From Auanema rhodensis (lineage: Eukaryota; Animalia; Nematoda): a DNA stretch of 64,000 bases. The DNA lies in the NCBI GenBank assembly GCA_964057225.1, contig OZ059894.1, positions 10,912,001 to 10,976,000 of the forward strand, written 5' to 3'. Below, one piece after another: positions 21,841-55,135 of this stretch. The notes under the pieces were generated by a model. The model searched no databases, was not told where the DNA came from, and saw only the letters and a program-made list of their open reading frames with translations. Made by a program: the position numbers and the translations under genes. Every line of letters begins with the position of its first letter. Position 1 is the stretch's first letter.

Positions 21841-23281
21841 GACCACAAAGAAAACAACAGGAACAGTAACAATAACAACAAAAAAAATTTTTTTCACCTA
21901 TGTGTCTAAAGGTTAGCCATGTATCCGTTTATATATATATATATCAACAGTAAAAAGTCCAATCAAGAGAGAAATTTTTTCAACACATAGTTGTACCGGT
22001 GCTCACACATGTTAAACACAAAAATAATAAAATTAAATTGATTGGAAGAATTATTTTTCAACTTTTTTTTCACATCTAACAATCACTGTTTTTGCTCATA
22101 ACTTTTTTAATTCGCAATTCGTGATCATATATAACAAGTTTCCATCAATATTGATTCTTTTAAAATTTTTTTTTCATCAATTTTGTACTTACTTACTTCT
22201 CTGAAAAATGTTTTACCATGTATCCATTTGGATACATGTCACCAGTTAAAAGAACCATCATGTTGGAATCATCTCAAACTACGTTTTTATAGGTTTTCCA
22301 ACATGCTGGACACAAATATTACATATTTAGAGCAATTGGAACAATTCTTTTTTTTAACATTCTTTAACATAAGGGTCCCCCCTACCTTTCTTTCTATTTT
22401 TTCTTCATATGTACGTAGATACTATAGAGAACTATGATAGAAAACTTTAACATTCACGAAATCATCATTTCTCATTACGCTACGGAGGTTTAAAAAGTTG
22501 TGTTTTACCTTATAATAGACCGGAAAACCCTTGTGTTAAAACTGGACCGTTTTTACACATATAAAAATGTCCCGTATTCGGGACCCTAATGTAACTTTTG
22601 ATTCCCTATATTTTTTTTCATGAAATTTACAATCTACTGTAGAAAGAAGAATTATTTTTATAAAAACTGTAAATTTTTGAAAAATGAAAACAAAACGAAA
22701 ACAAAAACAACTTTTTTTTGAACATTTTCTCACACAAGGGTCCCCCCTTACCTACTTTTTTTCTCATTACTCGTTTCAACCTCATCCGATCACTCTGCAA
22801 ACATGTTTAATCGTTCTAACTTGTTGAAATACGTCTTAAAAGTCTAAACAACATGCATATGCATAATAGAAACCACCCGAATAGGCCCCCACGCACTAAA
22901 CGAGATATATACATTACCAGTATAGTAATAGAACACATATTGAAGATTAATTCGATAAGAACAATTTATTGACGTAGAGAATGTTTGTTCCGAAAAACTA
23001 CAATATTAAACTATAAAAGTAACAAAAGCGTAGAGGCAGCAAAGACATGAATAAACATAAATGTAAATACAGAATTACCAGGTAGTACATAAGTATGACA
23101 AAAAATTATAAGAAAGCCATGAAAATAGAAGGTTTGTGAACAAATGAGAGGTACATCTTTGATCGTATAGTCATTTCTAAACCGTTCGTATGCTGCAGCA
23201 TCGTCATAAGCGTCACTCAAGTTGAATTTCCATGTGTACTACACGATTTTCATTCTTATTGTTACATTCTTTCCCTGAGGG
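21841..23281 (-). repeat. Array spacer (U2 downstream to next 5S upstream), including the fossil element at 22931-23185
   Basis: Reverse complement of ~46527-48216 with a ~250-bp internal deletion near 22387. Confidence 0.9.
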
Positions 23282-23429
23282 AATGGGCCGTTCCCGCCAG
23301 CAGTGCAAGAGCGGGTCGACCCGTGAGGTGGAGCTAGCAAGCCAGCATCTACCTCAAGTCTCAAAAATCGGTTAACCTTATTGTGAACCAATGGAACACA
23401 TATCGAAGGTTAATTCGATAAGAACGATT
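23282..23429 (-). ncRNA. U2: U2 snRNA 3' part (nt 39 to ~186), interrupted
   Basis: Same sequence as 609-756. Confidence 0.95.
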
Positions 23430-23808
23430 AATGGTTTATTGAATAACTAATGTTATGATACAATAAATAACCAATAAAAAAGAGCCCAGAATCGGGGAGA
23501 CGGTATTACCAGTACAACTTAAAACAGCAAGTAATTAAAAAGTACATAATAAGACACATTGCCAACAGAGGCTAAAACGACTCAAGAGTCGGGGGAGTGG
23601 GTTAAAAAAAATGAACAAAAAAATGAATATTAAAGCAGAACAATGAGAAATCAAGTGCCGCTATGATCAAACAATTTGAGTGCCTACGGCAATGATGTTA
23701 AAAATAAACAACAAAATACATGTACCAATGAAGGTCAGAAAGAAAGAAACAAAAGACAAAAATAAGTAATACAAAAAGTAAATACATTACAATCAAATCA
23801 CAAACAAG

Positions 23809-31503: not shown

Positions 31504-34500
31504 TTAGATAGTTGTTGGTCCTCCTATCACTGTTGAAGGTCGTTTCTTTCGTTCAACCGATGTGTTTGGTAAATTGATATGGGCATCAGGTATCTGAGAG
31601 CGTGTAAGCCTACTTTTAGGTTTTAAAGGGGGTATCACGCTGTTGTACCTTATTGGTACGTGAAACGGTTTTGGAGGAGTAATCGGATTTTTGTCTTCTA
31701 AACCGAGTGCCAATTTGAGAGCTGAGCTCCATCTTTTGATTGTAGGTAACTCTTTTTGTCTTTCTTCGTAGAGCTCTTGTCTTGTTTCTTCTCCAATTTT
31801 GTCGACCAATTGTTGGAATTGGTTGTTTTTTTCTTTGTTCGTAGATGTCTTGTCTGCTGTATCTAGTCCAGATTCCGATTGATAACTTTCTTGTTGTCTT
31901 TCCAACGTATCTTCCTGCGGTGTTATTGTTTCTTTAGTTGTTATTATAGGTCGGCTTTGTTCGTAGAACTCGTCCTCGTTATCGCTGTCCGAATCAGAAA
32001 TTGGGGGCGTGGCTTGACCGTTGTTCTGAGCGCGCGTATTGACCTGATCGTGCCGGGACCTGTTGCTATAAATAGCGGATCCCGCGTCATTTCTGCCGTG
32101 CTCGCTTTCCTCGATGTTATTGTCATCGGGTGGAAAGTATCTTATATTATTCTTATGAGCCCGTATTCTATTCCCGTCGTCATCTGCTAATATGACATTA
32201 TTTTTATTTATTTCTTTTATGAGGTACGGTCCATCACTGACTGCTTGCAGTTTGTTGGTGGGCTTTGCCCGTTTGACGAGAGCTCTGTTATCCACGTAGA
32301 GTTCTCGTTCTTGTATCTTGTGTGCCTCGTCGTATTTCTTCTTCATCTTCTCATTGTTCCTTGTTATCCTTTCGTATATTTTCTCATGTAAATCTCCTGT
32401 GGGTTTGAGAGTGGGTGCGGGAGTGTCCAGGTTGTGGTCGATTGGTAGTCGCGCTGCCTGACCAAAGATACAATCGTAGGGCGGTGTGCGAGTTGTGGCA
32501 TTAGGTAGCCTGTTGAGTGTGAATACTATCTTAGGTAGTATATCATCCCAATTGTCCTGTTCCGTATTTACGTACGACGTTAGTGCTTCTTCTAGTGTTC
32601 TGTGTAGTCGTTCCACTTGTCCATTTGCATTCTTGTAATATGGCATAGTTGTATGATGCTCGGAACCTAGTTGTTCGCACATTGTTTTGAATTCGTGAGA
32701 AACAAAATTGGATCCGTTGTCCGTTATGATCCTTTTTGGTGGTCCGAAAACAAAGAACAGGTTTTTCTTAATTGCTGTTATGATTTCTTCTGATGTTTGT
32801 CTTAATAATGGTGTTGCTATTATCCATTTGGAGAACGCGTCCTGTATTGATAAGATATACCTGTTCCCGTTTTGTGTTCGTGGTAGTGGTCCGAGAATGT
32901 CCATGTGAACTCTTTCCCAAGGTTGTGAAACGGTGGGAAAGTTTCTCATGGGTTCCACCGTTGCTTCATGCGGGTTATTTTTCCTTTTTGCGCACTGAAG
33001 ACATCTGTTGACGTAGTTGGTGATATCTTCTTGCATTCCTGTCCATGTATAACGGCGTAGAATTGAGTCATGTGTTTTGTTGATTCCTAGATGAGCTCCT
33101 AGTAATGGGTCCTTATGAAACTTATCAATTATTGCTGTAGTAATTGTTGGATCATTGGGTAGAACGGCTCGAGGTGTTTGGAATGCTGTTTTTGGCTTTG
33201 CATAGAGAATATTATTTTGAACTATATATCGATCTGTTAGTTGCCTTCCTGCTGTTTTGTTCTGAATCTTTTCTTTTGTTTCCATGATCCATTCTGTTTC
33301 CTCTTGAATTGTCCGAAGGTCCGTGATAGTTGTAATAGTAGAGATTTGATGCGTGGGAGATTCTTTCGTTTTCTTCTTTCTTTCCTTCGCTTCGTTGATT
33401 TCGTCTTCGAAGTATCTTGATAATGCGTCACAAACGCTATTAAGACGTCCTGGGCGATAGATAATTTCAATATCATACTCTTGGAGTACTATTTGAAATT
33501 TGGCTAGTCTTCCTATGAGGTCTTTTCTTGTCATAAGGCTAGTTAAGGGTCTATGATCGGTTATGATTTTGATCGGTGCTCCTAAGATGTAGGTGCGAAA
33601 CTGATGAACTGCGAAAGTTAGGGCTAAGGCTTCGATCTCAATCGGGGGGTAGTTCCTTTCTGCTTTGTTTAGTTTACGGCTAGCGAAAGCTATTGGGTGC
33701 AGTGGTTCTTGATCATCCGCAGATTGCAATAGAACTGCTCCTACTGCAATTATGCTTCCGTCGCTTTCAACTACGTATGGTCGTTTTGCTCTAGGTGCCT
33801 GAAGAACCGGTGCTTGACAAAGGGCTTTCTTCAGGTGTTGGAAAGATTTTTCTTCTTTGTCTCCCCATGTGAAAGCTTTATCCTTTTTTGTGAGGTCGTA
33901 GAGAGGTGAGGCAATTCCCGCGGCATTTTTGATGAATCTTCGAAAGTAGTTAACGACGCCCATGAAAGCTCTGACTCCTGTTGTTGACTTTGGTCTGGGG
34001 TAGTCTCTGATGGCTTTAATTTTCTGAGGGTCCGGTTTTATTCCCTCATATCCGACTATAAATCCGAGAAACTTGACTTCTCTTTGTCCAAAGGTGCATT
34101 TCTTCAGCTTAATTTTGAATCCTAGCTCTATTGCTACTCTCAAAACTTCTTCGATATCTTGAAGGTGTTGTGTGGTTGATTCTGATATAAGCAGAAGATC
34201 GTCTAGATATACGAAGAGTTTGCAGCGTACATGTTGTTGTAGGTACCGTACTGCGTTTTGGAATGTATGTGGGGCTCCACAGAGTCCCATGGGCATTCGA
34301 CAGTATTGATATGTACCACTAGTTGTAGTAAATGCTGTTAAATGTCGATCTTCTTTACGCAGAGGTATTTGGAAGAATCCTGATACCAAATCAAAGTTAG
34401 TGAAGATGCATGCTCCTGCTGCTAGATCGAGAATATCTTGTATGTTTGAAATGACGTATATCTGCTTTAGTGTTATGGCATTTAATGCTCGAAAATCCGT

Positions 34501-37200
34501 AACAAAACGGTATGTTTTGTCCTTCTTTTTGACGAGTATAACGGGACTTGTGGTAATAGAAATTGATGGTTCTATTATACCTTGTTCGAGCATTTCCTCC
34601 ACCTGTTTTTCGACTTCTTCTTGTTGAGTTAGAGGGATCCTGTATGTGATTTGAAATGATGGAAATTTTCCTGGTATGATAGGTATATTATGTTCCACTG
34701 GTCCTTTAAAAAGTCCGATATTGCGATCCTCGTTCAAGAAAGCTTCCTTATTTCTAAGTACTATTTTCTTTAATTCTTGTCTTTCCAATTGGGTGAAGAT
34801 GGTGTTTGTTACGTCGAGATCCTTTATGAAGTCGTCTGGGAAGTATGGTAGTTGTTCTTCCCATCTTGCTTCCGGTGGGACGTATTGTCCTTTTTGTTCT
34901 TTGATATCTCTTGGGATAGCGTAAGCAGTTCCGATTCCTTGATTTGTTTTAATTTTGATTGTTTCGGGTGAGATATTTGTAGCGAATATCTGAACCCCGT
35001 ATCCTGTTGGCGTGAAAGTTGTAGGGGCGAAAGTCATTTTTCCTATTCGTTGTGAACTTCTTATAAAAGCTTGTGCGTATGATGCTGGATCGTCTATTTC
35101 CAACGTGAGCGATCTGGTTTCTCCTGGGTAAAACTGTTTAGTTTCCAGGCTTACTACATGAGCTATCGTGTGGTTCTCGGTCCACGGTGAGTAGTCTTGT
35201 GCTAGAGGTACTATTGTATCTCCGACTAGCAATGAATTCTGAAGTGGTCGCAATGATGTATTTATTCCTATTTTGCTGAGGGCTTCTATAAAGTCTATTC
35301 CTAATAAGATAGGTGCTGGGCAGTGGTTGTTGGCAGAAATCAGTATTTTGTGCTCAATCTCTGTTTTTCCAATAACAATTGGAAGTCTTGTGTAGCCCAG
35401 GAAGGAAAACCGTGATTTGTTTGCTACGATAGCTGTTGTCTTTTCACCAACCATCGTTGCTGCCGGTAGTTGTTGAAATGTGCTTTCCTTCATATATGAT
35501 ATAGAAGCTCCTGTGTCCCATAAAGCAGTAAAGATCTGATTGTGGATGGAGAGAGGTACGAAAGGTAGTCGTGATCCTCCGATGTAGTTAATCCTTGATT
35601 CTTTCATGGAGTATCGTGGTAGATAGGCTAGAAAGTCGTTGTCTGATAGTGGAGCGTTGGGATCGTATCGGGAGATTCTTGAATAGAATTTGTTTTGTTG
35701 AGATTTATTCAGTGGTTGTAATTGCTGAAGTTCGATTTCTTTATTTTCTCGCCTTGGTTCTTCTTCTTCTTCTTTGAATGTTATTTGATTGATTGGTATC
35801 CTTGTGGTACATGCATATATTTTTAATGCCCAGATGGTAGCAGTTATAAGTCCTATTGCGACGAGAATTCCTCCAATAATGGCTAGTGTCCTTAGTATCC
35901 ATGCTGTAATTGATTCTCCTACATATTCGAAGAAATTTGTGATTTGTTTTTCTGCGTTGTTTGATATGTTATCTGCTAACATTAATGTCGTTCCAACTGT
36001 TCCTCCTATAATGCCTATTGGATTTAGATTAGAGAATCCAGACTGTTTGAAGACTGGTTTCAGCTTTCCTGGCAGAGTGGCTTGTAAGGATGCTAAGCTC
36101 GATCCGTAGGAGATAGCCAGTGCCATTGGAAATGTTGACTCCGTGAGGTTTGAAAATATGTTGGAATTGTTGAACTTAATGTGATCAATTTTTACAGATG
36201 TGAGTTCATCCGAAAATGAGAAGTGAGTTACATTCAATGTTGAATTATCTTTCATCCATTGATTGTTTATTTTGTAGGGATCTGATGTAGCCATATCGCA
36301 TGCTATGATGTGAGCATATGGTGTCAAATCTCTTGATCCTGGTGTAATGAATAGTTTGCCGTGATGTTCCGTGTCTACAGGCGTCTCCAGGTAACATTTA
36401 TCGTCTCGTTTGTGATCCGAATATACATGTGTTATTTGTACAGGGGTGCATGGCATGACGTAGATGAGATGTTCTCCGACGAATTTGGCTGAAATGTCCT
36501 GTCGACGAAGCATAGTGCGAATTCCTATGGTCGGATTAATTTGCAGGATTGCCCACCAGGTAAGTAGCTGTTTATTTTGCATTCTGCAAACGCTTTTCTT
36601 TGTTATTTGGAAAGCTTGTAAGATTTCCTCCTCGAGTTTTGACGTAGAGTATTGGAGGTGAGACCTTGTATCTTGTTGTCGTAGTTGATCATCGTATTTT
36701 TGAATAATATCTGCTCGTGTTCGTAGGAAATTGAGGTGTGCTTGTGATCCTGTGTGAGATTTAATTTCCTCTACCGGTTGAGTTGTTGTTGCTCGTTTTG
36801 TGGTAATCCGAGTTGTGGGAATTGTCCTAGGAGGTTTTCTGCGAGGTGTGGTAGTGAGAGGACGTGGTGGTGGAGTTACTGGAGTTGTTGTACTCTGGTA
36901 ATAATGATATCTCCTTGGTGTGGTTGTGAATTGAGGTAAAGGTGTCCGATAAGTAGTAGTTGTCGGATCAACTGTGGTTGCAGGGGTTCTAGTGGTTGTT
37001 GTAGTTGTAGTAGTTGTGGTAGTGGTTGTCGTAGGACTAGCACCCGGTGACTCAATGAGCTGAAGATATGTTTGTTGAAATAATAAGCTGTCTTCTTCCG
37101 TGATGGGTCTGGCTGTAGGTAGTGTTTTCGGGAATCCGTAGTTTTGTGCGTGTCCGTTGAAGATGAGAGTATAGTTGGGAAAGGTAATCGCTGAAGAATT
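31504..37200 (-). CDS. Gypsy 2 Env C-terminal half (Thr-rich, gB-like, TM) fused in frame to protease-RT-RNase H-integrase
   Basis: The frame of ORF 31504-36582 reads open upstream (FPNYTLIFNG, poly-Thr); LWDTGAS, YLDD, HMDILGP, TDNG. Confidence 0.9.
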   Translation of the reverse strand, partial: NSSAITFPNYTLIFNGHAQNYGFPKTLPTARPITEEDSLLFQQTYLQLIESPGASPTTTTTTTTTTTTTTRTPATTVDPTTTTYRTPLPQFTTTPRRYHYYQSTTTPVTPPPRPLTTTPRRKPPRTIPTTRITTKRATTTQPVEEIKSHTGSQAHLNFLRTRADIIQKYDDQLRQQDTRSHLQYSTSKLEEEILQAFQITKKSVCRMQNKQLLTWWAILQINPTIGIRTMLRRQDISAKFVGEHLIYVMPCTPVQITHVYSDHKRDDKCYLETPVDTEHHGKLFITPGSRDLTPYAHIIACDMATSDPYKINNQWMKDNSTLNVTHFSFSDELTSVKIDHIKFNNSNIFSNLTESTFPMALAISYGSSLASLQATLPGKLKPVFKQSGFSNLNPIGIIGGTVGTTLMLADNISNNAEKQITNFFEYVGESITAWILRTLAIIGGILVAIGLITATIWALKIYACTTRIPINQITFKEEEEEPRRENKEIELQQLQPLNKSQQNKFYSRISRYDPNAPLSDNDFLAYLPRYSMKESRINYIGGSRLPFVPLSIHNQIFTALWDTGASISYMKESTFQQLPAATMVGEKTTAIVANKSRFSFLGYTRLPIVIGKTEIEHKILISANNHCPAPILLGIDFIEALSKIGINTSLRPLQNSLLVGDTIVPLAQDYSPWTENHTIAHVVSLETKQFYPGETRSLTLEIDDPASYAQAFIRSSQRIGKMTFAPTTFTPTGYGVQIFATNISPETIKIKTNQGIGTAYAIPRDIKEQKGQYVPPEARWEEQLPYFPDDFIKDLDVTNTIFTQLERQELKKIVLRNKEAFLNEDRNIGLFKGPVEHNIPIIPGKFPSFQITYRIPLTQQEEVEKQVEEMLEQGIIEPSISITTSPVILVKKKDKTYRFVTDFRALNAITLKQIYVISNIQDILDLAAGACIFTNFDLVSGFFQIPLRKEDRHLTAFTTTSGTYQYCRMPMGLCGAPHTFQNAVRYLQQHVRCKLFVYLDDLLLISESTTQHLQDIEEVLRVAIELGFKIKLKKCTFGQREVKFLGFIVGYEGIKPDPQKIKAIRDYPRPKSTTGVRAFMGVVNYFRRFIKNAAGIASPLYDLTKKDKAFTWGDKEEKSFQHLKKALCQAPVLQAPRAKRPYVVESDGSIIAVGAVLLQSADDQEPLHPIAFASRKLNKAERNYPPIEIEALALTFAVHQFRTYILGAPIKIITDHRPLTSLMTRKDLIGRLAKFQIVLQEYDIEIIYRPGRLNSVCDALSRYFEDEINEAKERKKKTKESPTHQISTITTITDLRTIQEETEWIMETKEKIQNKTAGRQLTDRYIVQNNILYAKPKTAFQTPRAVLPNDPTITTAIIDKFHKDPLLGAHLGINKTHDSILRRYTWTGMQEDITNYVNRCLQCAKRKNNPHEATVEPMRNFPTVSQPWERVHMDILGPLPRTQNGNRYILSIQDAFSKWIIATPLLRQTSEEIITAIKKNLFFVFGPPKRIITDNGSNFVSHEFKTMCEQLGSEHHTTMPYYKNANGQVERLHRTLEEALTSYVNTEQDNWDDILPKIVFTLNRLPNATTRTPPYDCIFGQAARLPIDHNLDTPAPTLKPTGDLHEKIYERITRNNEKMKKKYDEAHKIQERELYVDNRALVKRAKPTNKLQAVSDGPYLIKEINKNNVILADDDGNRIRAHKNNIRYFPPDDNNIEESEHGRNDAGSAIYSNRSRHDQVNTRAQNNGQATPPISDSDSDNEDEFYEQSRPIITTKETITPQEDTLERQQESYQSESGLDTADKTSTNKEKNNQFQQLVDKIGEETRQELYEERQKELPTIKRWSSALKLALGLEDKNPITPPKPFHVPIRYNSVIPPLKPKSRLTRSQIPDAHINLPNTSVERKKRPSTVIGGPTTI

Positions 37201-37216
37201 TGACTGTCTTGTGAGA

Positions 37217-40156
37217 TCAGCCTGTAGCCAGAGTTGTAGGTGTCTGTGCTATTTCGAGTGCTATTTGTCTTGCTCGTTCGAGATAGTCGCCTTTGTGGTT
37301 TAGTAATCGTGTGGCAAAGTCGCTGATAGTGATTTGCTTGCTGAGTTTTGCCGTAATTTCTGATGGTAATAGATGTTCAATGGCGATTTCTGTGGAAAGT
37401 CGAATCTCGGCTTCTGCGAGTGTGTGTAGGATAACCATGTTGATATCGGTGTAGTTGTGCCATAAGAGTCGATATTTTAGTTTTGATGCTTCCAGTTGTA
37501 GGAATTTGATGAGCCCTATGTGTACGCTAGATGTTTTGAGGTAGTCTATAAGGTTATAGGTACTATCCAGTCTTTTACGATTTCGATATGTTTGGTACAT
37601 TGGTAGTAATCCTGTAGAACTGTCTGTGAGGCGAAGTGATTGATAGATAGTGATGTTGAAGAATCTCGTAGGGTACTCCTGTGGTGCTTTTCTCTTTTGA
37701 CGTCGGGGTTTTAACTCGTTGATGGAAATGTACGTACCGCTGTCAGTTGAATAGATGTTCTTATTCATACATCTTGTAGCAATAGGGTCTGGCGTGTCGT
37801 CGTTGAGGATGAATGCTCCTTGTATTTCCGAGATTATAACAGTATCATTATTGATTAGTGCTTCGAATTTTCCTAAAGTTGTGTAATCACAATTTCGATG
37901 GTTATTGGGTGGGATCCATGTGATAACTGCGTTTGTGGTGTTGCATACACCTTGTTGTTTAGTGCATCCCTCAGTGTTGATAAACAAGTCGGAGATTATA
38001 GTGTCATCGTGTAGGCTAGTCATCATTCCTCTTTCTAATGTGAATCTTGATTTTGTTGTGCAAGAGGATGACCAGAACGATTTTGATTGAGTATTGGTAG
38101 GCATAGGAGTTTTGAATAGTCCTGGAGCTTCCCGATTGAGGTTGTTATCCGTGTGTCGTCTCTCTTGAATGGCTGTTTTGCATTCTTGTGGAGTGGCTGG
38201 TTCTATTCGGAGTAATGTGAGGTTGTTTTCCCTGATGAAGAATAAGTCGTAGGCGCAAGCTTTATAGATTTCCTTGGAGCATTTCCATGCTTCCCATTCT
38301 TTGTAATTCATATTTTCTGCAAATAGTTCCACTGTTTTTATCTTGACTCCGTCTTTGTGTGCATAGTCTGAGCAGGTTGTTGGTCGAGGTGGTTCGAGGA
38401 AAATACCTCCTCGTTTGCCGATGCAGAGTTGATAGGTGTTGTCTGCCTGACAGGGTATCAAAGATAAAGCGATGACGGATAAGAATAGCGGTATGAACGG
38501 AAGTGTCTTCCTTGTTTTTCCTGTTTCTTTCTCCACTTTGTTAACGTGAAAACGAACGCTAGGGCTTCTGGTACGATCTCTGTACCTGTTATGTTGTCCA
38601 TGCGAAGTGCTGCGATTTCTTTGTTGGAATCCGCGATCGTGATAGTTTCCGCGGTTGTATCGGTCGTTTCCTCTGTGCTCATGTCGATCGTTTCCTCTGT
38701 TATCATATCGGTCGTTTCTTCTGTTATCGTATCGATCGTTGTATCTATCGTACCGTTGAGGACTACGATAACTGTTGTATCCTCGTTGGTATCCATTGTT
38801 TCTGTTATCTTGTCTGAAGTTGGGACGGTTATTTTGTCGGTCGTCCTGGTATCTTGGTGGGCGGTATCCTCCTCTTCTTTGATTCCATTGTTCCTGTGGG
38901 CGTTGTGGTCTTGATTGATTTCCATAAAACGTTCTTGGTTGGTGTGTTTGTGATTCGTCATGGGTTTTGTCCTGTTGTGAGGTTCTCATGTGGTTTATGA
39001 GACCGTTATTGATCTCTAATTGTTCCACGTTTTTGATCAAGTTGTTGATATGTAGCGACGGATCTTCGTCGGCTTCTACTGTTTCGGCGATAGTTACAGC
39101 TGCATCGAAGGTTATAGGGCTGCGGTTATTGACGTGTGTTCTTAAAGTCTTTCTTAGTCCTCCTAAGAACGAAACACGTAGTATTCTTTCGTCAGCTGTT
39201 GAGTCCATGTTGCATGATTCGTAAGCGAGATTTCTGCAACGTTGCGCGAAATTTTGTACCGTTTCGTTTTCTCCTTGTTTCAAATGGGTGAGTTTCGTAA
39301 ATGCAGCATCCCTCTTTTCTGGAGGTTGTAATTTCTCCGATAGTAGACGTTTGACGTGGTTCCATCCTTGGCGTAAGTCTTCTGCTGGTATAGTTCGCAG
39401 AGCTTCGGCGGCTCTGTCCGTTCCAAGAAGTAGATAAAGATGGGAAAGTCTCTCGGCAATAGGGACTTGAAGTGCATCAAAATATCCTTCTAGTCTTTGC
39501 ATGTAGAGATTGAATGGTACGGATCCATCATAAAGCGTAGGTTTATGATGGCGAATAGAAACATTGTTGGCTCTCGCGATAGGAGGATTATCTTGCTCCA
39601 TCTGATTTGCCATTTGAGGGCGACTTCTCTGCTCTGTAACATTCGAAGTCAAATTTATGTTATTGTCTGACGAAGAAGAGACAGGAGACAGAGAGTGCCC
39701 ATGCAAAGATTGATCAGTGGAAGAGGGGGAATTTCTAGGAATAGGAGAAGTGAGGATTTCCGCGTTTTCGGTTTGAATAGGACGTTGAGGAGAAGTGTGA
39801 TTTGGAAGATAAGTGTTAGTGCCGGTGTCAATGACTGTTTTTGGAGAGTGAGAAGAGCGTTTGGGCGTGGATTTACTAGATGTTGCTTTATTTTTATTCA
39901 AACTTATCGCATGCCTAGTAGTTTTGATAGCAGTTGTATAAAGTTTCTTAGCAGTTAGCGGTGTGCCCGGAATGGGGGGTAATTTCTTTGATTTAGCGTT
40001 AGTTTTCGGATGTTTCGCATCTGGTCGAAATGCATCCGGTGGTCCTCTTTTTCTTTGGTTTCTATGCAGTGCTGCTTCCACTGTCTGGGTATTCTCTTCG
40101 CTATTTGTAGTGTTTTGGGTATTATTTCCCGGCGGAGGGTTTTGATTCGCTGTGTC
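37217..40156 (-). CDS. Gypsy 2 Gag fused in frame to the Env N-terminal half; start codon displaced to 44186 by the nested BEL; ends at a deletion-induced stop
   Basis: KPTLYDG, LTHLKQGENETVQNF, signal peptide PFIPLFLSVIALSLIPCQA, YQLC, RRQKR furin-type site. Confidence 0.9.
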   Translation of the reverse strand, partial: DTANQNPPPGNNTQNTTNSEENTQTVEAALHRNQRKRGPPDAFRPDAKHPKTNAKSKKLPPIPGTPLTAKKLYTTAIKTTRHAISLNKNKATSSKSTPKRSSHSPKTVIDTGTNTYLPNHTSPQRPIQTENAEILTSPIPRNSPSSTDQSLHGHSLSPVSSSSDNNINLTSNVTEQRSRPQMANQMEQDNPPIARANNVSIRHHKPTLYDGSVPFNLYMQRLEGYFDALQVPIAERLSHLYLLLGTDRAAEALRTIPAEDLRQGWNHVKRLLSEKLQPPEKRDAAFTKLTHLKQGENETVQNFAQRCRNLAYESCNMDSTADERILRVSFLGGLRKTLRTHVNNRSPITFDAAVTIAETVEADEDPSLHINNLIKNVEQLEINNGLINHMRTSQQDKTHDESQTHQPRTFYGNQSRPQRPQEQWNQRRGGYRPPRYQDDRQNNRPNFRQDNRNNGYQRGYNSYRSPQRYDRYNDRYDNRRNDRYDNRGNDRHEHRGNDRYNRGNYHDRGFQQRNRSTSHGQHNRYRDRTRSPSVRFHVNKVEKETGKTRKTLPFIPLFLSVIALSLIPCQADNTYQLCIGKRGGIFLEPPRPTTCSDYAHKDGVKIKTVELFAENMNYKEWEAWKCSKEIYKACAYDLFFIRENNLTLLRIEPATPQECKTAIQERRHTDNNLNREAPGLFKTPMPTNTQSKSFWSSSCTTKSRFTLERGMMTSLHDDTIISDLFINTEGCTKQQGVCNTTNAVITWIPPNNHRNCDYTTLGKFEALINNDTVIISEIQGAFILNDDTPDPIATRCMNKNIYSTDSGTYISINELKPRRQKRKAPQEYPTRFFNITIYQSLRLTDSSTGLLPMYQTYRNRKRLDSTYNLIDYLKTSSVHIGLIKFLQLEASKLKYRLLWHNYTDINMVILHTLAEAEIRLSTEIAIEHLLPSEITAKLSKQITISDFATRLLNHKGDYLERARQIALEIAQTPTTLATG

Positions 40157-41286: not shown

Positions 41287-43776
41287 TCAAAAAAATTTTT
41301 TATAGTCAATTTTCCTATTCTTTCTTAGCCTATTCTTCCAAATTTCAATTTTTTCATCATTCTCACAGGAAGTATGTACTTTGTCATGATTATTTAATAA
41401 AGATTGTTCGAGGGTTATTTTCTTTTCTTCTGACTCATTCAAATTTTCGGATATTTCTAAAGGAATTAAGTGGTTTACGGATCTTAGGAAACGGTTTCCT
41501 TCTGAATTTCTGATTTTTGCTGTTCGAATTTCCCCATCTTTAGAAGTAATCAGTTCTTCTATAATGGCAAGTGGCCATTTGTGTCTTTTCACATTATTTT
41601 CCATACATAAAACAATTTCTCCGATTTTTGGTTGTAATTTATTGAAATTTTTTGTTATACTTTTTCTATTACTCATGGTCCTTAATTCCTCAAGATAAGT
41701 TATGGACCAGTCTTTCCAAAAATTACTAATACTATCATTGCAGGAGTGCATCCACTCTTTAATTTCGTTCAAATTATTTAGATTAGATTTATTTGTCGTA
41801 TGTACGAACTCACAAATGATATTATCTGGATGATAAAATTCTAAACTTTTTGGCGTTATTATCTTATCGAAATCGCTATTTATGTAGGAGATAGGTCTTA
41901 AATTTATGATATTTTCTATCTCAGTTAGTACTGTACTGAGTTCTTGGTATTCGATTTTTTTAATTCCTAGGGTTTTAATCAAATATTTCTTAGTTAAACC
42001 CACCATTCTCTCGTAAAAACCTCCTTTCCAAGGTGAGTATGGCGTAATTTTTTCCCATTTTATTTGTTTGTTGTTTAAAAAACTTTCTAATATTTTGTCT
42101 GTTTTCACGAACTGACTTCCGTTATCAGATATTACCTTAGTAGGTACTCTTTTTCTTGCGAAAAACTTTCTTAGATTAAGTGTTAATTCTTTGCTAGAGC
42201 TGTCATTGGCTAAGTCCAAGTATACCGCTCTTGTACAGAGGCAAGTGATCAACATAATCCACACTTTCTTATCAGAATTGGATTCTGTTTTCACTATTAA
42301 TGGACCTGCATAATCAATACCGATATTCTCAAATGGTTTATATTTTACAACTCTTTCTTTTGGTAGTTGAGGAAAATTAGGGTATTTATAAGGTCTGTTA
42401 TTAATTTTTTTGCATTTCAAGCAATCGTGAATTACCATATTTATACAAGTTTTTAATTTTACGATAAAAAATTCCTTTCTTACTATACCCATCAAAGTTT
42501 CCCTGTTTGCATGTAACGAACTTTCATGCATGTAATTCAGAAGTAGTTTTGTAAATAATTTCTTTCCAAATAGTAGTATTGGGTATGAATTTTTATCTTT
42601 ATCGGAGTGGCCCATACGGCCCCTCACTCTTAAAATTCCATGTTCGTCTTTAATGATATCTAGTTGCTTGAATTTTTTCTTTTCCAGGTTTTTAATATTC
42701 TGGTTTTGATGAATTTTTATGAGAAATTTTTGAATTGTTTTATTTTTCGTCATTAAATCTTTTTCCTCGAATTTATCAAACATACTTTCTTTACACTTAT
42801 TTGAGTTTTTCTTTATTTTAGTGACAAATGTCATTATTTGCCTAATTATATCAATTAATTTTGGGTATGTTGAAAATTTTCTTGCTAAAAAATCTAAATC
42901 TTCATTTTCCGTTTGATTTATTTCGGATTTTATCAATAAATTGACTATTTTTTGCTGCGGTTCTTCGCAATGTTTTTCAATCACTTCTTCAAGCGATTTA
43001 ATATTTTTGTTTCGGTCTATTTCATTTTTATACCATTGAGGACCTTTAATCCATTCCTTGTAAACTGAATCTTCAACTTCTGAACCTCTTGTAGGTAAAT
43101 CAGCTGGATTTGATTTTGTATTCACATAGAAAAACTGAATTGTTGTCTTCATTTTTTCTATTTCTCTCACAATTTCGTTTATTTTATTCAGTCTATTACG
43201 AATATATATCTTTTTTGTTGGATTTTTGTGTAACCAACATAGTACTACTTGTGAATCAGTTAAAATTTTTATTTTTTCTAATTTTATATTCATTTCGCTG
43301 ACGTTGTCTTTCAACATTTTCATACCAAATAGTAAAGCTGTTAGTTCTTTCATTGGTATGGTTCCTTCAATCATTGTTGAAGATTTAGAGCAAAGAAACT
43401 CAATTTTTTCTGTTTTTCCAGCTTCATTTACATATGCTAAATACGCAACACATGCTATAACATCTTTAGATGCATCTGTGAATAATAAATATTCAAATTT
43501 TCCATTTTTCTCATTTATATCTTTCATTAATGACCTGTTAACCTCAACTTTAGCATTTTCTAACTTTGTATATAATTTTTTCCATATTATTTGTTGATGT
43601 TCTGGTATTTCTATGTCCCAGTCAATTTTTAATTCCCATATTTCTTTTAGAAATAACCTAGCTTTGACGGTTAAAGGCTGAGTTAGACCTAATGGGTCGA
43701 AGATTGAATTAATGAAACTGAGGATAGTTCGTTTCGTTATTTTTTCTTCTTTCCATATAGGAATTTTTATTTCCAA
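41287..43776 (-). pseudogene. BEL2 pol fragment (RNase H and integrase), 5'-truncated, no env
   Basis: IFDPLG, FTDAS, TDSQV, NPADLPTRG, GIDYAGP, SDNGSQF, PWKGGFYERMV. Confidence 0.9.
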
Positions 43777-46340: not shown

Positions 46341-46526
46341 ATCGCTTCTCGGCCTTTTGGCTAAGATCAAAGTGTAGTAATCGTTCTTATCGAATTAACC
46401 TTCGATATGTGTTCCATTGGTTCACAATAAGGTTAACCGATTTTTGAGACTTGAGGTAGATGCTGGCTTGCTAGCTCCACCTCACGGGTCGACCCGCTCT
46501 TGCACTGCTGGCGGGAACGGCCCATT
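46341..46526 (+). ncRNA. U2: U2 snRNA, the only uninterrupted copy (3' end approximate)
   Basis: ATCGCTTCTCGGCCTTTTGGCTAAGATCAAAGTGTAGTA, stem IIa, Sm site, stem-loops III and IV. Confidence 0.97.
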
Positions 46527-46537
46527 CCCTCAGGGAA
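46525..46537 (+). terminator. Short hairpin at the U2 3' end (putative 3'-end formation signal)
   Basis: TTCCC-TCA-GGGAA in all four U2 loci. Confidence 0.5.
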
Positions 46538-46622: not shown

Positions 46623-46877
46623 ACGGTTTAGAAATGACTATACGATCAAAGATGTACCTCTCATTTGTTCACAAACCTTCTATTTTCATGGCTTTCTTAT
46701 AATTTTTTGTCATACTTATGTACTACCTGGTAATTCTGTATTTACATTTATGTTTATTCATGTCTTTGCTGCCTCTACGCTTTTGTTACTTTTATAGTTT
46801 AATATTGTAGTTTTTCGGAACAAACATTCTCTACGTCAATAAATTGTTCTTATCGAATTAATCTTCAATATGTGTTC
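46623..46877 (+). pseudogene. Fossil family B-like 3' UTR plus decayed U2 fragment in the spacer
   Basis: Reverse complement of 258-512. Confidence 0.85.
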
Positions 46878-48273
46878 TATTACTATACTGGTAATGTATA
46901 TATCTCGTTTAGTGCGTGGGGGCCTATTCGGGTGGTTTCTATTATGCATATGCATGTTGTTTAGACTTTTTAGACGTATTTCAACAAGTTAGAACGATTA
47001 AACATGTTTGCAGAGTGATCGGATGAGGTTGAAACGAGTAATGAGAAAAAAAGTAGGTAAGGGGGGACCCTTGTGTGAGAAAATGTTCAAAAAAAAGTTG
47101 TTTTTGTTTTCGTTTTGTTTTCATTTTTCAAAAATTTACAGTTTTTATAAAAATAATTCTTCTTTCTACAGTAGATTGTAAATTTCATGAAAAAAAATAT
47201 AGGGAATCAAAAGTTACATTAGGGTCCCGAATACGGGACATTTTTATATGTGTAAAAACGGTCCAGTTTTAACACAAGGGTTTTCCGGTCTATTATAAGG
47301 TAAAACACAGCTTTTTAAACCTCCGTAGCGTAATGAGAAATGATGATTTCGTGAATGTTAAAGTTTTCTATCATAGTTCTCTATAGTATCTACGTACATA
47401 TGAAGAAAAAATAGAAAGAAATTTTTCTGGAAGCAAGTTTCATTGAGCGTTCCGTATAAGGAACATTATGATAAAAATTATAAGGGGGTAAAACATATCA
47501 TTGTTAACCAAGACGTCTGAAAATAAAATTTTCTATTACAATAAATATGAAGTTCTATCATACATATGCATGTTATAAAGACTTTCAAGACGTATTTCAA
47601 CGGGTTAGAACGAGTTTAAACCGAGTTATGAGGAAAAACAATGATATTTAAAAAAGTAAGTAAGGAGGTAGGGGGGACCCTTATGTTAAAGAATGTTAAA
47701 AAAAAAGAATTGTTCCAATTGCTCTAAAAATGTAATATTTGTGTCCAGCATGTTGGAAAAACTAAAAACGTAGTTTGAGATGATTCCAACATGATGGTTC
47801 TTTTAACTGGTAACATGTATCCAAATGGATACATGGTAAAACATTTTTCAGAGAAGTAAGTAAGTACAAAATTGATGAAAAAAAAATTTTAAAAGAATCA
47901 ATATTGATGGAAACTTGTTATATATGATCACGAATTGCGAATTAAAAAAGTTATGAGCAAAAACAGTGATTGTTAGATGTGAAAAAAAAGTTGAAAAAGA
48001 ATTCTTCCAATCAATTTAATTTTATTATTTTTGTGTTTAACATGTGTGAGCACCGATACAACTATGTGTTGAAAAAATTTCTCTCTTGATTGGACTTTTT
48101 ACTGTTGATATATATATATATATATATAAACGGATACATGGCTAACCTTTAGACACATAGGTGAAAAAAAATTTTTTTTTGTTATTGTTACTGTTCCTGT
48201 TGTTTTCTTTGTGGTCGTATCTATTAACAACAAGATTTAGAGTGATATAACTGATAATGAAGAATATGACATT

Positions 48274-49440: not shown

Positions 49441-49536
49441 TCGTATGCTGCAGCATCGTCATAAGCGTCACTCAAGTTGAATTTCCATGTGTACTACACG
49501 ATTTTCATTCTTATTGTTACATTCTTTCCCTGAGGG

Positions 49537-49684
49537 AATGGGCCGTTCCCGCCAGCAGTGCAAGAGCGGGTCGACCCGTGAGGTGGAGCTAGCAAGCCAG
49601 CATCTACCTCAAGTCTCAAAAATCGGTTAACCTTATTGTGAACCAATGGAACACATATCGAAGGTTAATTCGATAAGAACGATT
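49537..49684 (-). ncRNA. U2: U2 snRNA 3' part (nt 39 to ~186), interrupted
   Basis: Same sequence as 609-756. Confidence 0.95.
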
Positions 49685-50195
49685 TATTGACGTAGAGAAT
49701 GTTGGTCCCGAGAGACTACAATATTAAACTATAAAAGTAACAGAAGCCCAAAGGCAGCGAGAACATAAAGAAATATCGAGGTATTTACAGAGTTACCAGA
49801 TAGTATGTGTACATGATCAAAGTATAACAAAGACATGAGGAAATAAAGATTTGTGAACAAATGAGAAATACAGTTTTGGTCATGTGGTCACTTTTGAATC
49901 GATTTAGTTCTATATTGCTATAGATTTTTAGAGACAGCAGAATATTACAATATTGATTCGAAAGTGACCTGCAACTCTAACTAGTATATGAACAATTTGA
50001 AAAGAACAATAGTAGATAGCAGAAAACAAACAAAGCATAGGTAATTATAAATACATTTAATCACTTAATATTTGATAGTTGTCAGGTTTAACAGGTAAAG
50101 GTTGAGGTTGGGGTTGATAAAAGAAGCTAAACAGATAATGAAAAACCTAGCAACTATTGAGATATTAACAACATAATACATAAAGAAGAAATTGG

Positions 50196-53100
50196 TTAAT
50201 TTTCTTGCTGAGATTGTGAAGGCTTGGAGAATTGGCGGTTTCCGGATACATGTTCCACGTAGATATCGCGAGCCCAGCGGATAACGTCGCTGACAATGAG
50301 TTTCTCCATCAAATGGTTGTATCGTCGGCCAATTCCTAGCGAAGCGAGTGCTTTTCCGTTCAAAGGATCCATGGTACCAAGAGCTCCAACCACGTAGGCT
50401 TCCAGTGATGTCTTGTATCCCTTTTCTTCCAGCTTTTTCTTCAATTCAGCATACTTCGTTTCTTTGTCCAGTCTTGCTTTAGCTAACGCCAAACTCCGGT
50501 TTTCATAGCTTACAACTACATCTACTATGGAACAAGTCATATGCTTGTCATTGATTATTGCTATGTCCGGACGAAGCGATGTCATACCAGGTATTTGTTG
50601 GTTGATATAGATTTTAGCGTCTTTAGGCTTCTTGGCAGCTTTCACTAGACGATTCATGATTTCATTATGCCTTAGTTGGACAGCTTCTGAATGAGCATTA
50701 CAGCGTCCAAAAACGTGTGCAGCTGATTCATTCTGATATCCACATCTACGACATCTTCGGTCTCCATCTCCGTGGCGGCGACATCCGTTAAGTTGAAGCA
50801 CGTTGAGCCGGGCTTTGTGGATGAATCTCCAATCGGCAAACCTGATGAAGTCACCACGAGCCAGATAGTGATTAGATGAGTTCCGGATAATAGATGTTTC
50901 AAAGACTCGTCCTTGATCTGGTTTTTCACGAAGTGAACGAATTTCTTCACTCCAAAGAGCTTGTCGAAGTGCCTTCTTAACGAACCGAGGATTGAGTGGT
51001 CGGTTGTCAAGTTGCAATCCTTAAGCAGCTTCTTCAGTGATGTTCCAGTTGATGTTAATGGAGGATTTTAGACGTCTTGTTGCGGCCCTTACTCTAGTCC
51101 AAGTTGATGAAACGTCAGCAGTATAGGTATCAAAAATTCCTTCAATGCTTCCGTTGTAATATTCAGTGATGTTCTGAGTTGTTGGTGCTGCTTTAATCCT
51201 AGATTGAACTGCGTGCACCGCATCAGAGTACGCAATCGACTGAACTAGCGGGTCCTTGGAATTTAGGATCATTTGGGCGTGGGCTAGCTGACAGCAGTCA
51301 CTGAGCTTCTGGAGCTTTGTGAAACCAAGTCCACCGTGAGTGGTGGGGATGTAGAGTGGTTCCGCACTTGCTCGTTGGGGCAGATGAAGCCATTGACGGC
51401 CGCATCTACTAAGGTGTTGATCGAAGCTTACTAGTTTGTCCTTGCTGACTTTTCCGTTAGTCATATGAAAGTCCATACAGGGGAGAATAAACTGTCTTAC
51501 TGCGTCCGCTTTTTGCCAGTCAGTTAGTTTAGACTCGTGGATCTTTCTGAGATCTTGATTCATCTTGATCATGATGTCGTCGGCGGTGTACTGTAGATGC
51601 ATTCCAGTAGGTACTCCTAAGTGACTGTATGCATCGTACTTGTCGAGAGAAGGCATGACTTCGCCTTGAATGATGAAGTTGGTGGTGGTAATTTTTCCTT
51701 GGTTGAACATCAAACTAGCGCATTTGGGAGGTTTGAACTTGAGTCCTAGGTTGGAAGCAGAGGCGGATGTTACTTCGAGCGCTTTTTGAAGGTCAGACTC
51801 CGAGTTGCTTATGAGCACTAGGTCATCAGCATAGGCGAGAACTCGAATGTTTGAGTCGTGAAGCTTGTATCCTTCAGTAGAATGTTCAATTGCTTTAATC
51901 AAGGGTTCGATGGCTAGATTGAAGAGTATCGGAGAGATAGGCGAACCCTGTAGCACTCCAGCTTCGATCTTGATTGGTTCCGTGTTAATTGATCCAGCGG
52001 AAACTATAGTAGAAGCACCCCTATAAGTTTCCAGAATCCGAGAAACAGCAATAGGTCCGAGTCCTGACCAGCGTAGCGAGCATTCTAAAGATGAATGCGG
52101 AAGGGATCCGAAGGCATTAGCAAGATCAAGCCATGCTATGGCAATCTTTTTACGGTTCCTTCTGGCGTCTGCTATTGCTGATTGGAGGATGTAATTGTGC
52201 TCCGTGCATCCCGGTGCTGAGATGAAGCCTTTTTGAGCAGGTGAAATTCTTTTTTCGGCCACTGTCCAACGGTGAAGTCTTAAAGTTATACAGGCTGAGT
52301 ACAGCTTTCCAATGGTGTTTCCGAGGGAGATAGGTCTCCAATTGGTGACCTCAGCTTTATCTCCTTTTTTGTGTAGAAGTACCGTCTTTGAGATCTTCCA
52401 GCCGTCTGGCACGTACGACAAGTCGTGTACCAAGTTGAAGATTCTAGACAGTACATGTCCATGCTTGTCCATTTTCCTCCAGTGGGAGTATCGTATACGA
52501 TCGTTCCCTGGAGCAGTGTCGCTACACTTTTTCAGATGCTTCCATATTTCCTTCGGAGTGAAGGCGCCTTCAAGGGGCTCATCAGATGAGCAGGCTTCAG
52601 GCTGAAGCGTCGGCATTTCCATACTGTGTGAGCTAGAAGCATGCACAGTGCTGAAGTGAGCAGTCAGGGTAGACTTGTCGATGGTACAAGCTTCATATGG
52701 AAGATTCAAGACGTTCCTATAGGCCTTCTTCTTATTAGCTCTCCAGAGCTTCTGAATCTTCATTGCTTTTATCTTGTCCAATTCGGGAGACTCTATTTCC
52801 GCTCGACCTCTGTTGCCACTAGTTCTGTGAAGAGGTCGCGACGCTGGAGGAAGGGTACTCTGAATCTCCGATGTTATCACCTGCAGAGCATGTTCAAAGT
52901 CAACTGAATCAATTACTCGATTCAGAATTCTAATCCACGCTAATTGGGTGTCGGACATATCGATGGAATTACCCGGCGTACGATCTTCTAATATAGGACG
53001 CCCAGAGTCGCTCGCCGTATCCCTTACGGGTGTTGCGGGTGCGGTCGCGGGGACGCGGGAACCAATCGATTCTGGTACAAGGTCCATTTCCTGTGGCACC

Positions 53101-53471
53101 ATGTCGCTCCGATCGATTGACTGATCGGGGAGCGTCATTTCCGGTGAAGGAGAATGACGGGCCATTCGGATGCGTAGGACTCTTGCAGGCGTGCTAGGGG
53201 AAACAGAAGAGGCAAGTGTGCGTGCAACAGACGAACAAGGCTCATTATCTCTAATGTGCTTGTTTATAAATTTTAAGTCACGTACTATGCTACATCCTCT
53301 GCATCCAAATTCCATGTTCATTTTGTGCTCAATTCTTAGATGTTTGGAGAGCGCCGCGTGGTTGCCATAACTTCTTGGGATCGGTAGGCAGGCTTCACAG
53401 TTGAATGGGGCTTGAAGAGGGACCATTAAAACCTGAGATGCGCCACCTTCGATGACTCTTCTCACGGGCAT
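50196..53471 (-). pseudogene. Family B ZF-RT-CCHC-RLE ORF with one in-frame TAA at 51021-51023
   Basis: ORFs 51021-53483 and 50196-51017 are in the same frame; WLDLANAFGS, YADD, CRRC..HVFGRC, RPDIA. Confidence 0.9.
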
Positions 53472-53622
53472 TATGAAATACAAGGAATATAAATATGGTA
53501 AGTTGAAAAAAAATTAGTTAAAACATTAACTTATATTACCAGCAACTTTGTAGTTTGATCGCTTCTCCCAGAGATGGTCAGTACGTAGTTTGAACTTGCT
53601 CTGGTGTCTCAAATAACTCGTC

Positions 53623-53673
53623 TATTGTGAACCAATGGAACACATATCGAAGGTTAATTCGATAAGAACGATT
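53623..53673 (-). ncRNA. U2 nt 39-89 segment (leader of family B; target of family A copy 3)
   Basis: Exact match to 46379-46429. Confidence 0.9.
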
Positions 53674-55094
53674 AATGGTTTATTGAATAACTAATGTTAT
53701 GAAACAATAAATAACCAATAAAAAAGAGCCCAGAATCGGGGAGACGGTATTACCAGTACAACTTAAAACAGCAAGTGATTAAAAAGTACAAAATAAAACA
53801 CATTACCAACAGAGGCTAAAACGACTCAAGAGTCGGGGGAGTGGGTTAAAAAAAGTAATGAATAACAAAAAAAATGAATAATAAAGCAGAACAGTGAAAA
53901 GTAAATATCAAGTGCCGCTATGATCAAACAATTTGAGTGCCTACGGCAATGGTGTTAAAAATAAACAACAAAATACATGTACCAATGAAGGTCAGAAAGA
54001 GAGAAAGAAAAAAGACAAAAATAAGTAATACAAAAAGTAAAAAATATATTACAATCAAATCACAAACAAGTCAATGGATAATTTCTTCTTCATACTGCCT
54101 TACACCAGAAACATGTTCCACGTAGATATTCCTGGCCCACTTGATGGTATCGGCGACGACGAGCTTCTCCATTAGCCGGTTGTAGTGGCTGCTGATCTTG
54201 AGTGATCGGAGGGCTTGTACGTTGAGCGGGTCCATAGTTCCAAGCATTCCTACGACATACGCTTCTACACTAGTCTTATAACCAAGACATTGGTATTGGC
54301 TGGCTATGTCAGCATATTTCCTCTCCTTTATCATACGCGCGGCTATCATGGCTTGTCGGCGGTTTTCATAGCTCACTGTAACATCAACGATACTACAGTG
54401 TTTTGCGTCATGATCGACCACTACTATGTCAGGTCGGAGTGTACTATTAATGCCAGGAAGAGGCTGGTTAGTGTAAACTTCTCCGTTTTTAGGCTCTGGC
54501 AGGGCTTTGATAAGACGGTCCACGATGTTGTTGTGGCGGAGTTGGATTGCTCTCGTGTGAAAGTGGCAGTGTCCAAGAACATGTGCAGCAGTTTCGTTGG
54601 GGTAACTACACCTGCGGCACTGTTTGTTTCCTTCTCCGTGTCTTCTACAGCCATTGAGCTGGAGAGTATTAAGTCGAGCCTTGTGGATGAATCGCCAATC
54701 AGCAAACCGTATGAAATCTCCCTTCGCCATAAAGTGATTGGACGCTTTGTTGAGCATTGTGACATCAAAGACTTTCCCTTGATCCGGTTTTTGAAGAAGG
54801 ATCCGAAGGTCTTTCAGCCATAATGCACGTCGCAGGCTTCTGTGGCATAGTGAAGGTGTTAACAGTTGGTTGTTTAGATTGAGTTCTAAACCACTTTCGA
54901 GGCATGTCCAGTTAGCGTTGATGAGTTTCTTGAGTTGACGCATCGCTACTCTTACTCTAGTCCAGATGGAGGAAACATCAGATGTTTCGGTGTCGAAAAT
55001 GCCATCAACGGAACCGTTGTAATATGCAGCTGTCTCATCGTTACTGGCTTGACGTTTAATCCTTTTTGATGCTACTTTTATTGAGTCTTGATGC
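53674..55094 (-). mobile_element. 5'-truncated family A copy 3 (ORF remnant 54071-55094)
   Basis: Close variant of 23430-24832 with several substitutions and indels. Confidence 0.95.
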
Positions 55095-55097
55095 TAC

Positions 55098-55135
55098 ACT
55101 ACACTTTGATCTTAGCCAAAAGGCCGAGAAGCGAT
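55098..55135 (-). ncRNA. U2: U2 nt 1-38 remnant
   Basis: ATCGCTTCTC...AAGTGTAGT with upstream flank. Confidence 0.92.

Follow-up and report, generated by a model that had tools for sequence, protein, structure and literature searches.

A 5' UTR block complementary to the 5' end of U2 snRNA recurs across lineages of U2-specific Utopia retrotransposons and may form a fold-back helix

The 64,000-nucleotide stretch of Auanema rhodensis DNA analysed here (hereafter the window) carries a retrotransposon whose 5' UTR contains a ten-nucleotide string identical to the start of U2 snRNA, in the orientation opposite to that of the element. The question raised by this locus is whether that string is a chance match or a signal and, if a signal, which RNA it pairs with. 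According to Rfam matches, the window is a nematode 5S/U2 tandem array with linked 5S genes and several interrupted U2 genes, the sole intact U2 gene lying at 46341-46530 (plus strand). The array has been invaded by Utopia-type (restriction-like-endonuclease, non-LTR) retrotransposons, for which the integration site is U2 nt 38/39. Large LTR-type retroelements (BEL/Pao peptidase A17, integrase, gag) were present in the same array at 2637-8946, 11334-20360, 31504-40081 and 41287-43776. The unit containing the element in question, F2, was resolved by BLAST of the intact U2 gene against the window and by self-comparison of the window. In minus-strand order it consisted of U2(1-38), an F1 fragment, U2(38-89), F2 and U2(39-190), with the following features:

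55098-55135, minus strand: U2 nt 1-38, the original head of the interrupted U2 gene (38/38 identity to intact U2)
53675-55097, minus strand: 5'-truncated F1 copy (family A of the original prediction), inserted at U2 nt 38 of the head and 97.3% identical to 23379-24832
53623-53674, minus strand: U2 nt 38-89, leader or target duplication immediately before F2 (52/52; partial Rfam U2 match)
53472-53622, minus strand: F2 5' UTR (family B of the original prediction), 151 nt, delimited by start codon placement
53558-53567, minus strand: block A, which reads GAGAAGCGAU in element RNA and complements U2 nt 1-10 perfectly, with a conserved CA behind it
53585-53589, minus strand: ACUAC, complement of U2 nt 34-38, a weak and non-significant remnant of block B (p=0.96)
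51021-53471, minus strand: N-terminal part of the F2 ORF with zinc finger and reverse transcriptase (RVT_1, E=3e-30), ending in an in-frame stop at 51021-51023
50196-51020, minus strand: C-terminal part of the F2 ORF, carrying the CCHC motif and restriction-like endonuclease; reading frame unchanged past the stop (translation and conserved alignment columns)
49685-50195, minus strand: F2 3' UTR (BLAST with U2 and self-comparison)
49533-49684, minus strand: U2 nt 39-190, 3' flank forming the canonical Utopia 3' junction (152/152; PMC4640811)

F2 spanned 53622 to 49685 on the minus strand, and the U2 nt 1-38 head is now split from it by the later insertion of F1. The truncated F1 copy contained an ORF tail (54071-54943), and a full-length F1 copy was found at 27139-23431; with 48% protein identity, F1 and F2 are sister families. 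Element I (1621-757, minus strand), located between U2(1-79) and U2(39-190), was an 865-bp non-coding rider without any ORF longer than 71 aa. Its last 38 nt matched the F2 3' end, and its 5' end had AATCGATA...TACTAC in common with the F1 UTR. The array spacers at 254-511, 22927-23184 and 46624-46881 were each a copy of 49645-49901 (79% identical); these copies, comprising the F2 3' end and U2 nt 39-78, are the fossil of an old Utopia insertion that is now part of the repeat unit. For window positions 53634-53672, many high-depth contigs (from all four sequencing runs and at least two related organisms) joined U2 nt ~78 to ~40 via a 16-17-nt insert, ATGAAATACCAAAATTT and variants thereof, and such joins resemble either minimal insertions with extreme truncation or fossil copies of a split U2.

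Utopia elements are U2 snRNA gene-specific non-LTR retrotransposons reported from nematodes and arthropods (Kojima & Jurka 2015, PMC4640811), and are defined by a 3' junction at U2 nt 39 (PMC4640811). F2 had no LTRs, and one long ORF continued in frame beyond a single stop. A reverse transcriptase was identified in residues 372-592 of an 820-aa piece (RVT_1, E=3.2e-30), and the translation carried an N-terminal zinc finger as well as C-terminal CRRCG...H...C and RPD...D...K strings; no APE domain was present. In the Utopia protein alignment, C911, C914, H923, C928, R972-P973-D974, D989 and K1008 were invariant or nearly so. The start codon (53471-53469) was supported by an MPVRR N-terminus in common with a Diploscapter protein and a soil-metagenome relative (P0026, L001). 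Given that its 3' end abuts U2 nt 39, and given its domain content, F2 was classified as a Utopia-type element. Relatives of 34-56% identity included proteins of Dendroctonus ponderosae, a species listed in PMC4640811, and nematode proteins; nematodes are listed there as a host phylum, without the nematode species matched here. Dozens of related loci had U2 nt 1-39 on their upstream side and U2 sequence from nt 39 on their downstream side, which identified them as Utopia.

As described for Utopia (PMC4640811), the elements had a single ORF with an N-terminal zinc finger, a reverse transcriptase and a C-terminal CCHC plus PD-(D/E)xK endonuclease; the 3' flank began at U2 nt 39, multiple families coexisted and were stacked in U2 arrays, and the 5' junctions varied. 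The U2 duplications differed, extending here from nt 38/39 to nt 79, 89 or 96, whereas that paper reports 0 and 20 bp. A further difference is that PMC4640811 does not describe a conserved block in the 5' UTR with complementarity to U2 nt 1 to 8-12; antisense or complementary sequence, promoters and ribozymes all go unmentioned in that paper. The F2 copy in the window is probably dead, since it is cut off from U2 nt 1-38 by the 1.4-kb F1 fragment and contains the in-frame stop.

On the plus strand, positions 53558-53567 read ATCGCTTCTC, identical in 10/10 positions to nt 1-10 of the intact U2 gene (46341-46530), and the block is thus antisense in the minus-strand element RNA, in which it occupies nt 56-65 of the 151-nt 5' UTR. 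It was followed in order on the plus strand by AGAT (53572-53575) and GTAGT (53585-53589); a second ACUAC was present in the UTR at 53550-53554. The best ungapped helix between the F2 UTR and U2 nt 1-12 was significant against dinucleotide shuffles of the UTR (p=0.002), as was the local gapped alignment to antisense U2 1-45 (p=0.019), and the control alignments to sense U2 and to antisense U2 46-90 were not significant. RNAduplex energy, assessed with mononucleotide shuffles by a method that permits long internal loops, was marginal (p ~0.06). For U2 nt 19-39, the branch-point region, the helix was at chance level (p=0.96). The original prediction had read the UTR as U2 nt 1-10 followed in order by nt 24-27 and 34-38; the 10-mer was exact and all of the pieces were present, but the accompanying 4-5-nt matches were at chance. 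Its wider claim, that the UTR is antisense to the branch-point region, did not hold up, given the p value for nt 19-39 and a predicted F2 fold in which the branch-point part was not used. Nor was F2 a third unrelated UTR with the same fold-back, as had been proposed: families A and B are the sister families F1 and F2, the string ACTACGTA, within which the ACUAC at 53585-53589 falls, was present in both of their UTRs, and the three UTRs of the window are not independent. In contigs from three related organisms, the F2 UTR was almost unchanged at low depth, with variants only in the AT-rich spacer 53488-53535, which is too little variation to gauge constraint.

A protein search with F1 as query recovered relatives in nematodes, a scorpion, insects, spiders and many metagenomes, and 91 loci were fetched (L numbers below). 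The element-sense motif GAAG(C/U)GAU(CA) can base-pair with U2 nt 1 through 8-12. Its core GAAG(C/U)GAU (GAAGYGAT) was found in the 5' UTRs of six loci (L007, L017, L018, L019, L020 and L023) relative to ~0.35 expected in ~12 kb of UTR by a rough estimate, and outside UTRs its frequency equalled random expectation. The best Watson-Crick/G-U helix to U2 nt 1-12 was also determined in 31 Utopia 5' UTRs and compared with shuffles. Seven UTRs (F2 and the same six loci) had such a helix at p<=0.012, beginning at U2 nt 1 in all seven, compared with 0-3 of 31 for four control targets, among them U2 46-66 and reversed versions of both U2 target segments. Combined by Fisher's method, the p value was 1.8e-4 for block A, and among the controls it ranged over 0.2-0.85. 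Two loci, L022 and L024, were left out of the count, as their 13-nt antisense U2 1-13 string sits in an intergenic spacer with ambiguous ownership. Block A was missing from 24 of the 31 UTRs in the helix test and is therefore not essential to the Utopia family; in the Diploscapter-like L001 and L010, the closest to F2, this test found just a non-significant CACTACA string near the ATG.

The carriers of block A belonged to at least four deep lineages (F2; L007; the L017/18/19 clade with L023; and L020), between which protein identity was 34-46% and the UTRs were otherwise unalignable. The block was located 12-73 nt behind the end of the U2 leader; in the scorpion elements, the antisense block lay ~330 nt behind it. 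Because the same block recurs in distantly related elements of other animals, block A appears from these comparisons to be a genuine, selected RNA signal rather than a coincidence. All variants retained pairing with U2 through G-U pairs: GAAGUGAU in L017 and L019, GGCGAU in element I and L029 and, less certainly, GAAGUGGU in L015, L016 and L034, with GAAGUGG in L050. Bases past block A never complemented the U2 upstream flank, complementarity stopping exactly at U2 +1. Wobble-only variation and this stop point to pairing at the RNA level; the U2 side of the helix cannot vary, and true compensatory covariation thus cannot be seen. An origin of block A as a junction artefact or by template switching was ruled out, the block being internal, antisense and conserved across lineages. 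In six of seven cases (window 53558-53556 and the homologous sites in L007, L017, L018, L019 and L023), block A was followed by CA, which likewise had no complement in the U2 upstream flank; an interaction with the cap is one idea for this dinucleotide.

Complementarity to U2 nt 19-39 (block B) was not a general Utopia feature, ungapped helices being found in 3 of 31 UTRs, the same as for controls. It was strong only in Centruroides, element I and L018, and was partly present in F1; among scorpion elements, it was strong in four families. In L002 (Centruroides), 18/18 nt immediately before the ATG were antisense to U2 18-35, and the block B variants of L003 and L011 included ACACATTTG, which complements a U2 variant, CAAATGTGT, present in the U2 fragment next to L003. 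Mimicry of an intron 3' splice site or branch site fitted L002 (GGTAAGT upstream, pyrimidine tract and TTAG before the ATG) and was dropped as a general explanation, L003 and L011 being without AG before the ATG.

Other strings related to splicing or to U2 were observed in these elements. The consensus 5' splice-site and U1-binding string (G)GTAAGT was conserved in the 5' UTR of each of the four scorpion Utopia families (L002:5733, L002:9920, L003:~3700 and L011:~2222), and was also seen in L079 and L022 and, as CGTAAGT, in F1 (window 27113-27107, minus strand). Since no conserved 3' splice site partnering it was found in these Utopia UTRs, the string may be a U1-binding signal rather than part of an intron. 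Alignment of the scorpion 5' UTRs (L002:5640-6030, L002:9815-10250, L003:3575-4030 and L011:2135-2530) revealed long invariant blocks, for example around CCGCCGGAAGAGCGGCC and GGTTTAAACGCAC, in elements whose proteins are only 46-47% identical, which points to exchange of UTRs among families or to conservation of a structured RNA or a promoter. The L007 3' UTR (2330-2560; copy at ~8080-8310) contained approximately six or seven short hairpin repeats, each with a CACUACUG-like string that is complementary to the branch-point-binding GUAGU(G) of U2 and resembles a branch site; these hairpins could be binding sites for U2 or for protein. At L007:2766-2915, the 5' junction was at the extreme 3' end of U2, an arrangement that would restore an intact U2 gene ahead of every copy, and duplicated or rearranged U2 5' pieces preceded the elements at L032:366-440 and L039:137-267.

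Secondary structures were predicted for U2-headed UTRs, and in natural contiguous U2-head and UTR sequences the minimum-energy structures closed the U2 5' domain with block A. For L018 (nt 69-190), none of 200 shuffles folded as well (z=-3.9), and the closing helix of nt 1-8 with block A enclosed U2 stem-loop I and a helix of U2 nt 23-37 with block B; the same closing helix was predicted for L019 and L023. In the natural chimera of the window, U2(1-79) with element I (z=-2.8), U2 nt 31-39 paired with UACUACAC and nt 1-6 with GGCGAU. For F2, a fold of U2(1-89) joined to the UTR bore out one part of the original proposal, nt 1-10 pairing with block A at a probability of 0.96 and nt 1-8 pairing with the UTR in just 1.7% of UTR shuffles, but the branch-point part remained unpaired with the UTR and the overall fold was no better than that of UTR shuffles (z=-0.65).

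The position of the elements suggests how such a helix could arise. In full-length insertions, the element is immediately preceded by the U2 promoter and a U2 head, which extends from nt 1 to ~53-96 or, in one family, comprises the whole of U2; sense-orientation elements directly behind U2 +1 and the promoter include U2(1-79)/element I at 1700-1622 and those with U2 heads before L013, L018, L019, L023 and L029. Because full-length copies stand behind the U2 promoter and head, the element RNA most likely starts at U2 +1, and complementarity that runs from U2 nt 1 without the upstream flank fits a partner RNA with its 5' end at U2 +1. Searches of sequencing runs for this stretch of DNA returned no RNA-seq run. 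On balance, we lean towards block A being a selected cis-element of U2-specific Utopia that would let a transcript initiated at the U2 promoter (+1) fold back into a helix. Block A, tens of nucleotides into the 5' UTR, would pair in cis with the first 8-12 nt of the same RNA and thereby close the captured U2 5' domain into a terminal helix, leaving U2 stem-loop I intact. In some families, block B would additionally pair with the branch-point-recognition region (U2 nt ~19-38); F2 would represent a state with a perfect block A (10 bp) and a decayed block B.

The helix would most likely either stop the U2 head from acting as U2 (in U6 pairing, branch-site binding, or snRNP or quality-control entry) or form a defined, protected 5' end of the template or mRNA. 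Self-masking of the captured U2 domain would be one reasonable purpose, the helix hiding the 5' end that pairs with U6 and, in certain families, also the bases that bind the branch point; protection or definition of the 5' end, or a protein-binding platform, would fit equally well. Harm to the host from an unmasked U2 head seems unlikely because U2 is abundant, and masking, if that is the point, would more probably serve the element RNA than the host. The antisense blocks were kept in the non-coding element I, which argues for a role in the RNA and against a purely translational one.

The same sequence pattern would be predicted if block A (and block B) paired in trans, binding mature U2 snRNA or snRNP or nascent U2 transcripts rather than the element's own head, and carrying the RNP to Cajal bodies or U2 arrays or altering its nuclear fate; we consider this possible, if rather unlikely. 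The blocks complement exactly the single-stranded parts of U2 that are used for U6 and branch-site pairing and skip stem-loop I, the +1 end of the complementarity is also the 5' end of mature U2, and the repeated hairpins of the L007 3' UTR carry a CACUACUG-type string like that of a branch site. Internal copies of tandem arrays (L007, Centruroides L002) keep the blocks with no U2 nt 1-38 in cis, but these are recent copies of head-bearing ones and hold little information on function. Wherever the head is present, an intramolecular helix should beat a trans partner, and blocks B and A are nested and colinear, as a fold-back requires. A role of the antisense module as an RNA guide, in which pairing with the U2 5' end and branch-point region would let the Utopia RNP ride U2 snRNP traffic to transcribing U2 arrays, is unlikely in our judgement; if true, it would constitute an RNA-guided homing step in a protein-targeted retrotransposon.

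For the F2 copy itself, block A could be a chance match or could descend from an ancient inverted piece of U2, as an inherited fossil that no longer has a function. The copy is low-copy, interrupted by a stop and detached from its head, the short matches accompanying the block are at chance, and a 10-mer match alone is no great rarity in 64 kb of sequence (~0.1 expected over two strands). Such an origin nevertheless leaves the conservation across lineages unexplained: the same 8-12-mer stands at the same place behind the leader in six other, otherwise unalignable UTRs, starts at U2 nt 1 in every case and differs only by wobble. We regard a relic or coincidence as improbable.

A role at the DNA or cDNA level is very unlikely. 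In first-strand cDNA the block is sense U2 nt 1-10, and could pair with the cDNA 3' end or with upstream target DNA, aiding the 5' junction or the start of second-strand synthesis; the uniformity of R2 5' junctions has been attributed to cDNA-target annealing via retained target sequence (PMC3774820), and the target sequence matched by block A lies entirely on the upstream side of the nick (nt 38/39). The G-U-compatible variants (C to U, A to G), however, are mismatches in DNA, the U2 head itself already gives homology for the 5' junction, and no scheme was found whereby an internal inverted block produces the observed junctions.

The least probable reading, and a highly improbable one, takes block A as the 3' strand of a P1-like stem in a self-cleaving ribozyme that cuts a read-through co-transcript at U2 -1/+1: R2 P1 pairs ~7 nt of upstream target with the 5' UTR, with strands 23 to >700 nt apart and cleavage at its 5' edge (PMC3774820), and the helices here (8-12 bp, starting exactly at U2 nt 1) share this P1-type feature, but no 3-bp P3, L3 or P1.1 core was seen by eye beside block A in F2, L007, L018, L019 or L023, the two bases after the block are CA and not a G-rich P1.1 partner, cleavage at U2 +1 is needless at what is already a transcription start, and the block-to-ATG gap is only 19 nt in L019. 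Rfam searches of the window and L001/L002 (gathering threshold) and of the F2 UTR and a Centruroides UTR (E<=10) returned only U2 and 5S and no ribozyme around the latter UTRs, with the limit that covariance models may miss split ribozymes with a long J1/2.

Among known systems, the P1 stem of the R2 ribozyme is the closest published analogue of the block A helix. R2 is likewise a site-specific element with a restriction-like endonuclease that is co-transcribed with its target gene, its helix strands can lie far apart (Eickbush et al. 2013, PMC3774820), and the target sequence that it retains is proposed to direct how the 5' junction forms (PMC3774820). In contrast to the HDV-like 5' ribozyme of R2, no ribozyme core was found around the F2 and Centruroides UTRs; the Utopia helix lies where transcription of the host gene begins rather than at a cleavage site within it, the promoter is a Pol II snRNA promoter and not a Pol I promoter, and some Utopia families have a second block over the branch-point region. 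The SLACS, CZAR and CRE elements are also of the restriction-like-endonuclease type; they lie a few nucleotides into trypanosomatid spliced-leader RNA genes and are reportedly transcribed from +1, capturing ~11 nt of host RNA. We know of no antisense fold-back block reported for them. Keno, a U2-specific element of the APE type, shares the U2 target position of Utopia and differs in its enzymatic machinery; Keno and SINEU, the latter being snRNA-headed SINEs (PMC4494074), resemble the elements described here in having a U2-derived 5' head on a mobile RNA and differ in machinery from Utopia.

Capture of a small-RNA promoter, put forward originally as part of an undescribed strategy, is not new in kind, as SLACS and CZAR illustrate and as does co-transcription of R2 (PMC3774820), and the elements themselves were already known as Utopia. 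The antisense block is the part of that claim that stood: a literature search found no published description of it in Utopia, and later R2/Utopia papers (2026) citing PMC4640811 contain, in those passages where Utopia is mentioned, nothing on such a block. What is new is the nt 1-10 block as a robust, widely conserved component, its recurrence in other animals and its end at U2 +1. To our knowledge, genome surveys are the only source of information on Utopia elements, and no publication deals with how their RNA is made or shaped. Conservation of block A between nematode- and arthropod-type lineages would be the first sequence-level evidence for U2-headed Utopia transcripts that come from the host snRNA promoter and have their head folded away. 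The finding is of interest to retrotransposon specialists and, while R2-like elements are being engineered for site-specific insertion (PMC13580325), block A offers a useful contrast to the ribozyme solution of R2; a single helix of 8-12 bp provides a concrete, testable handle on Utopia biology.
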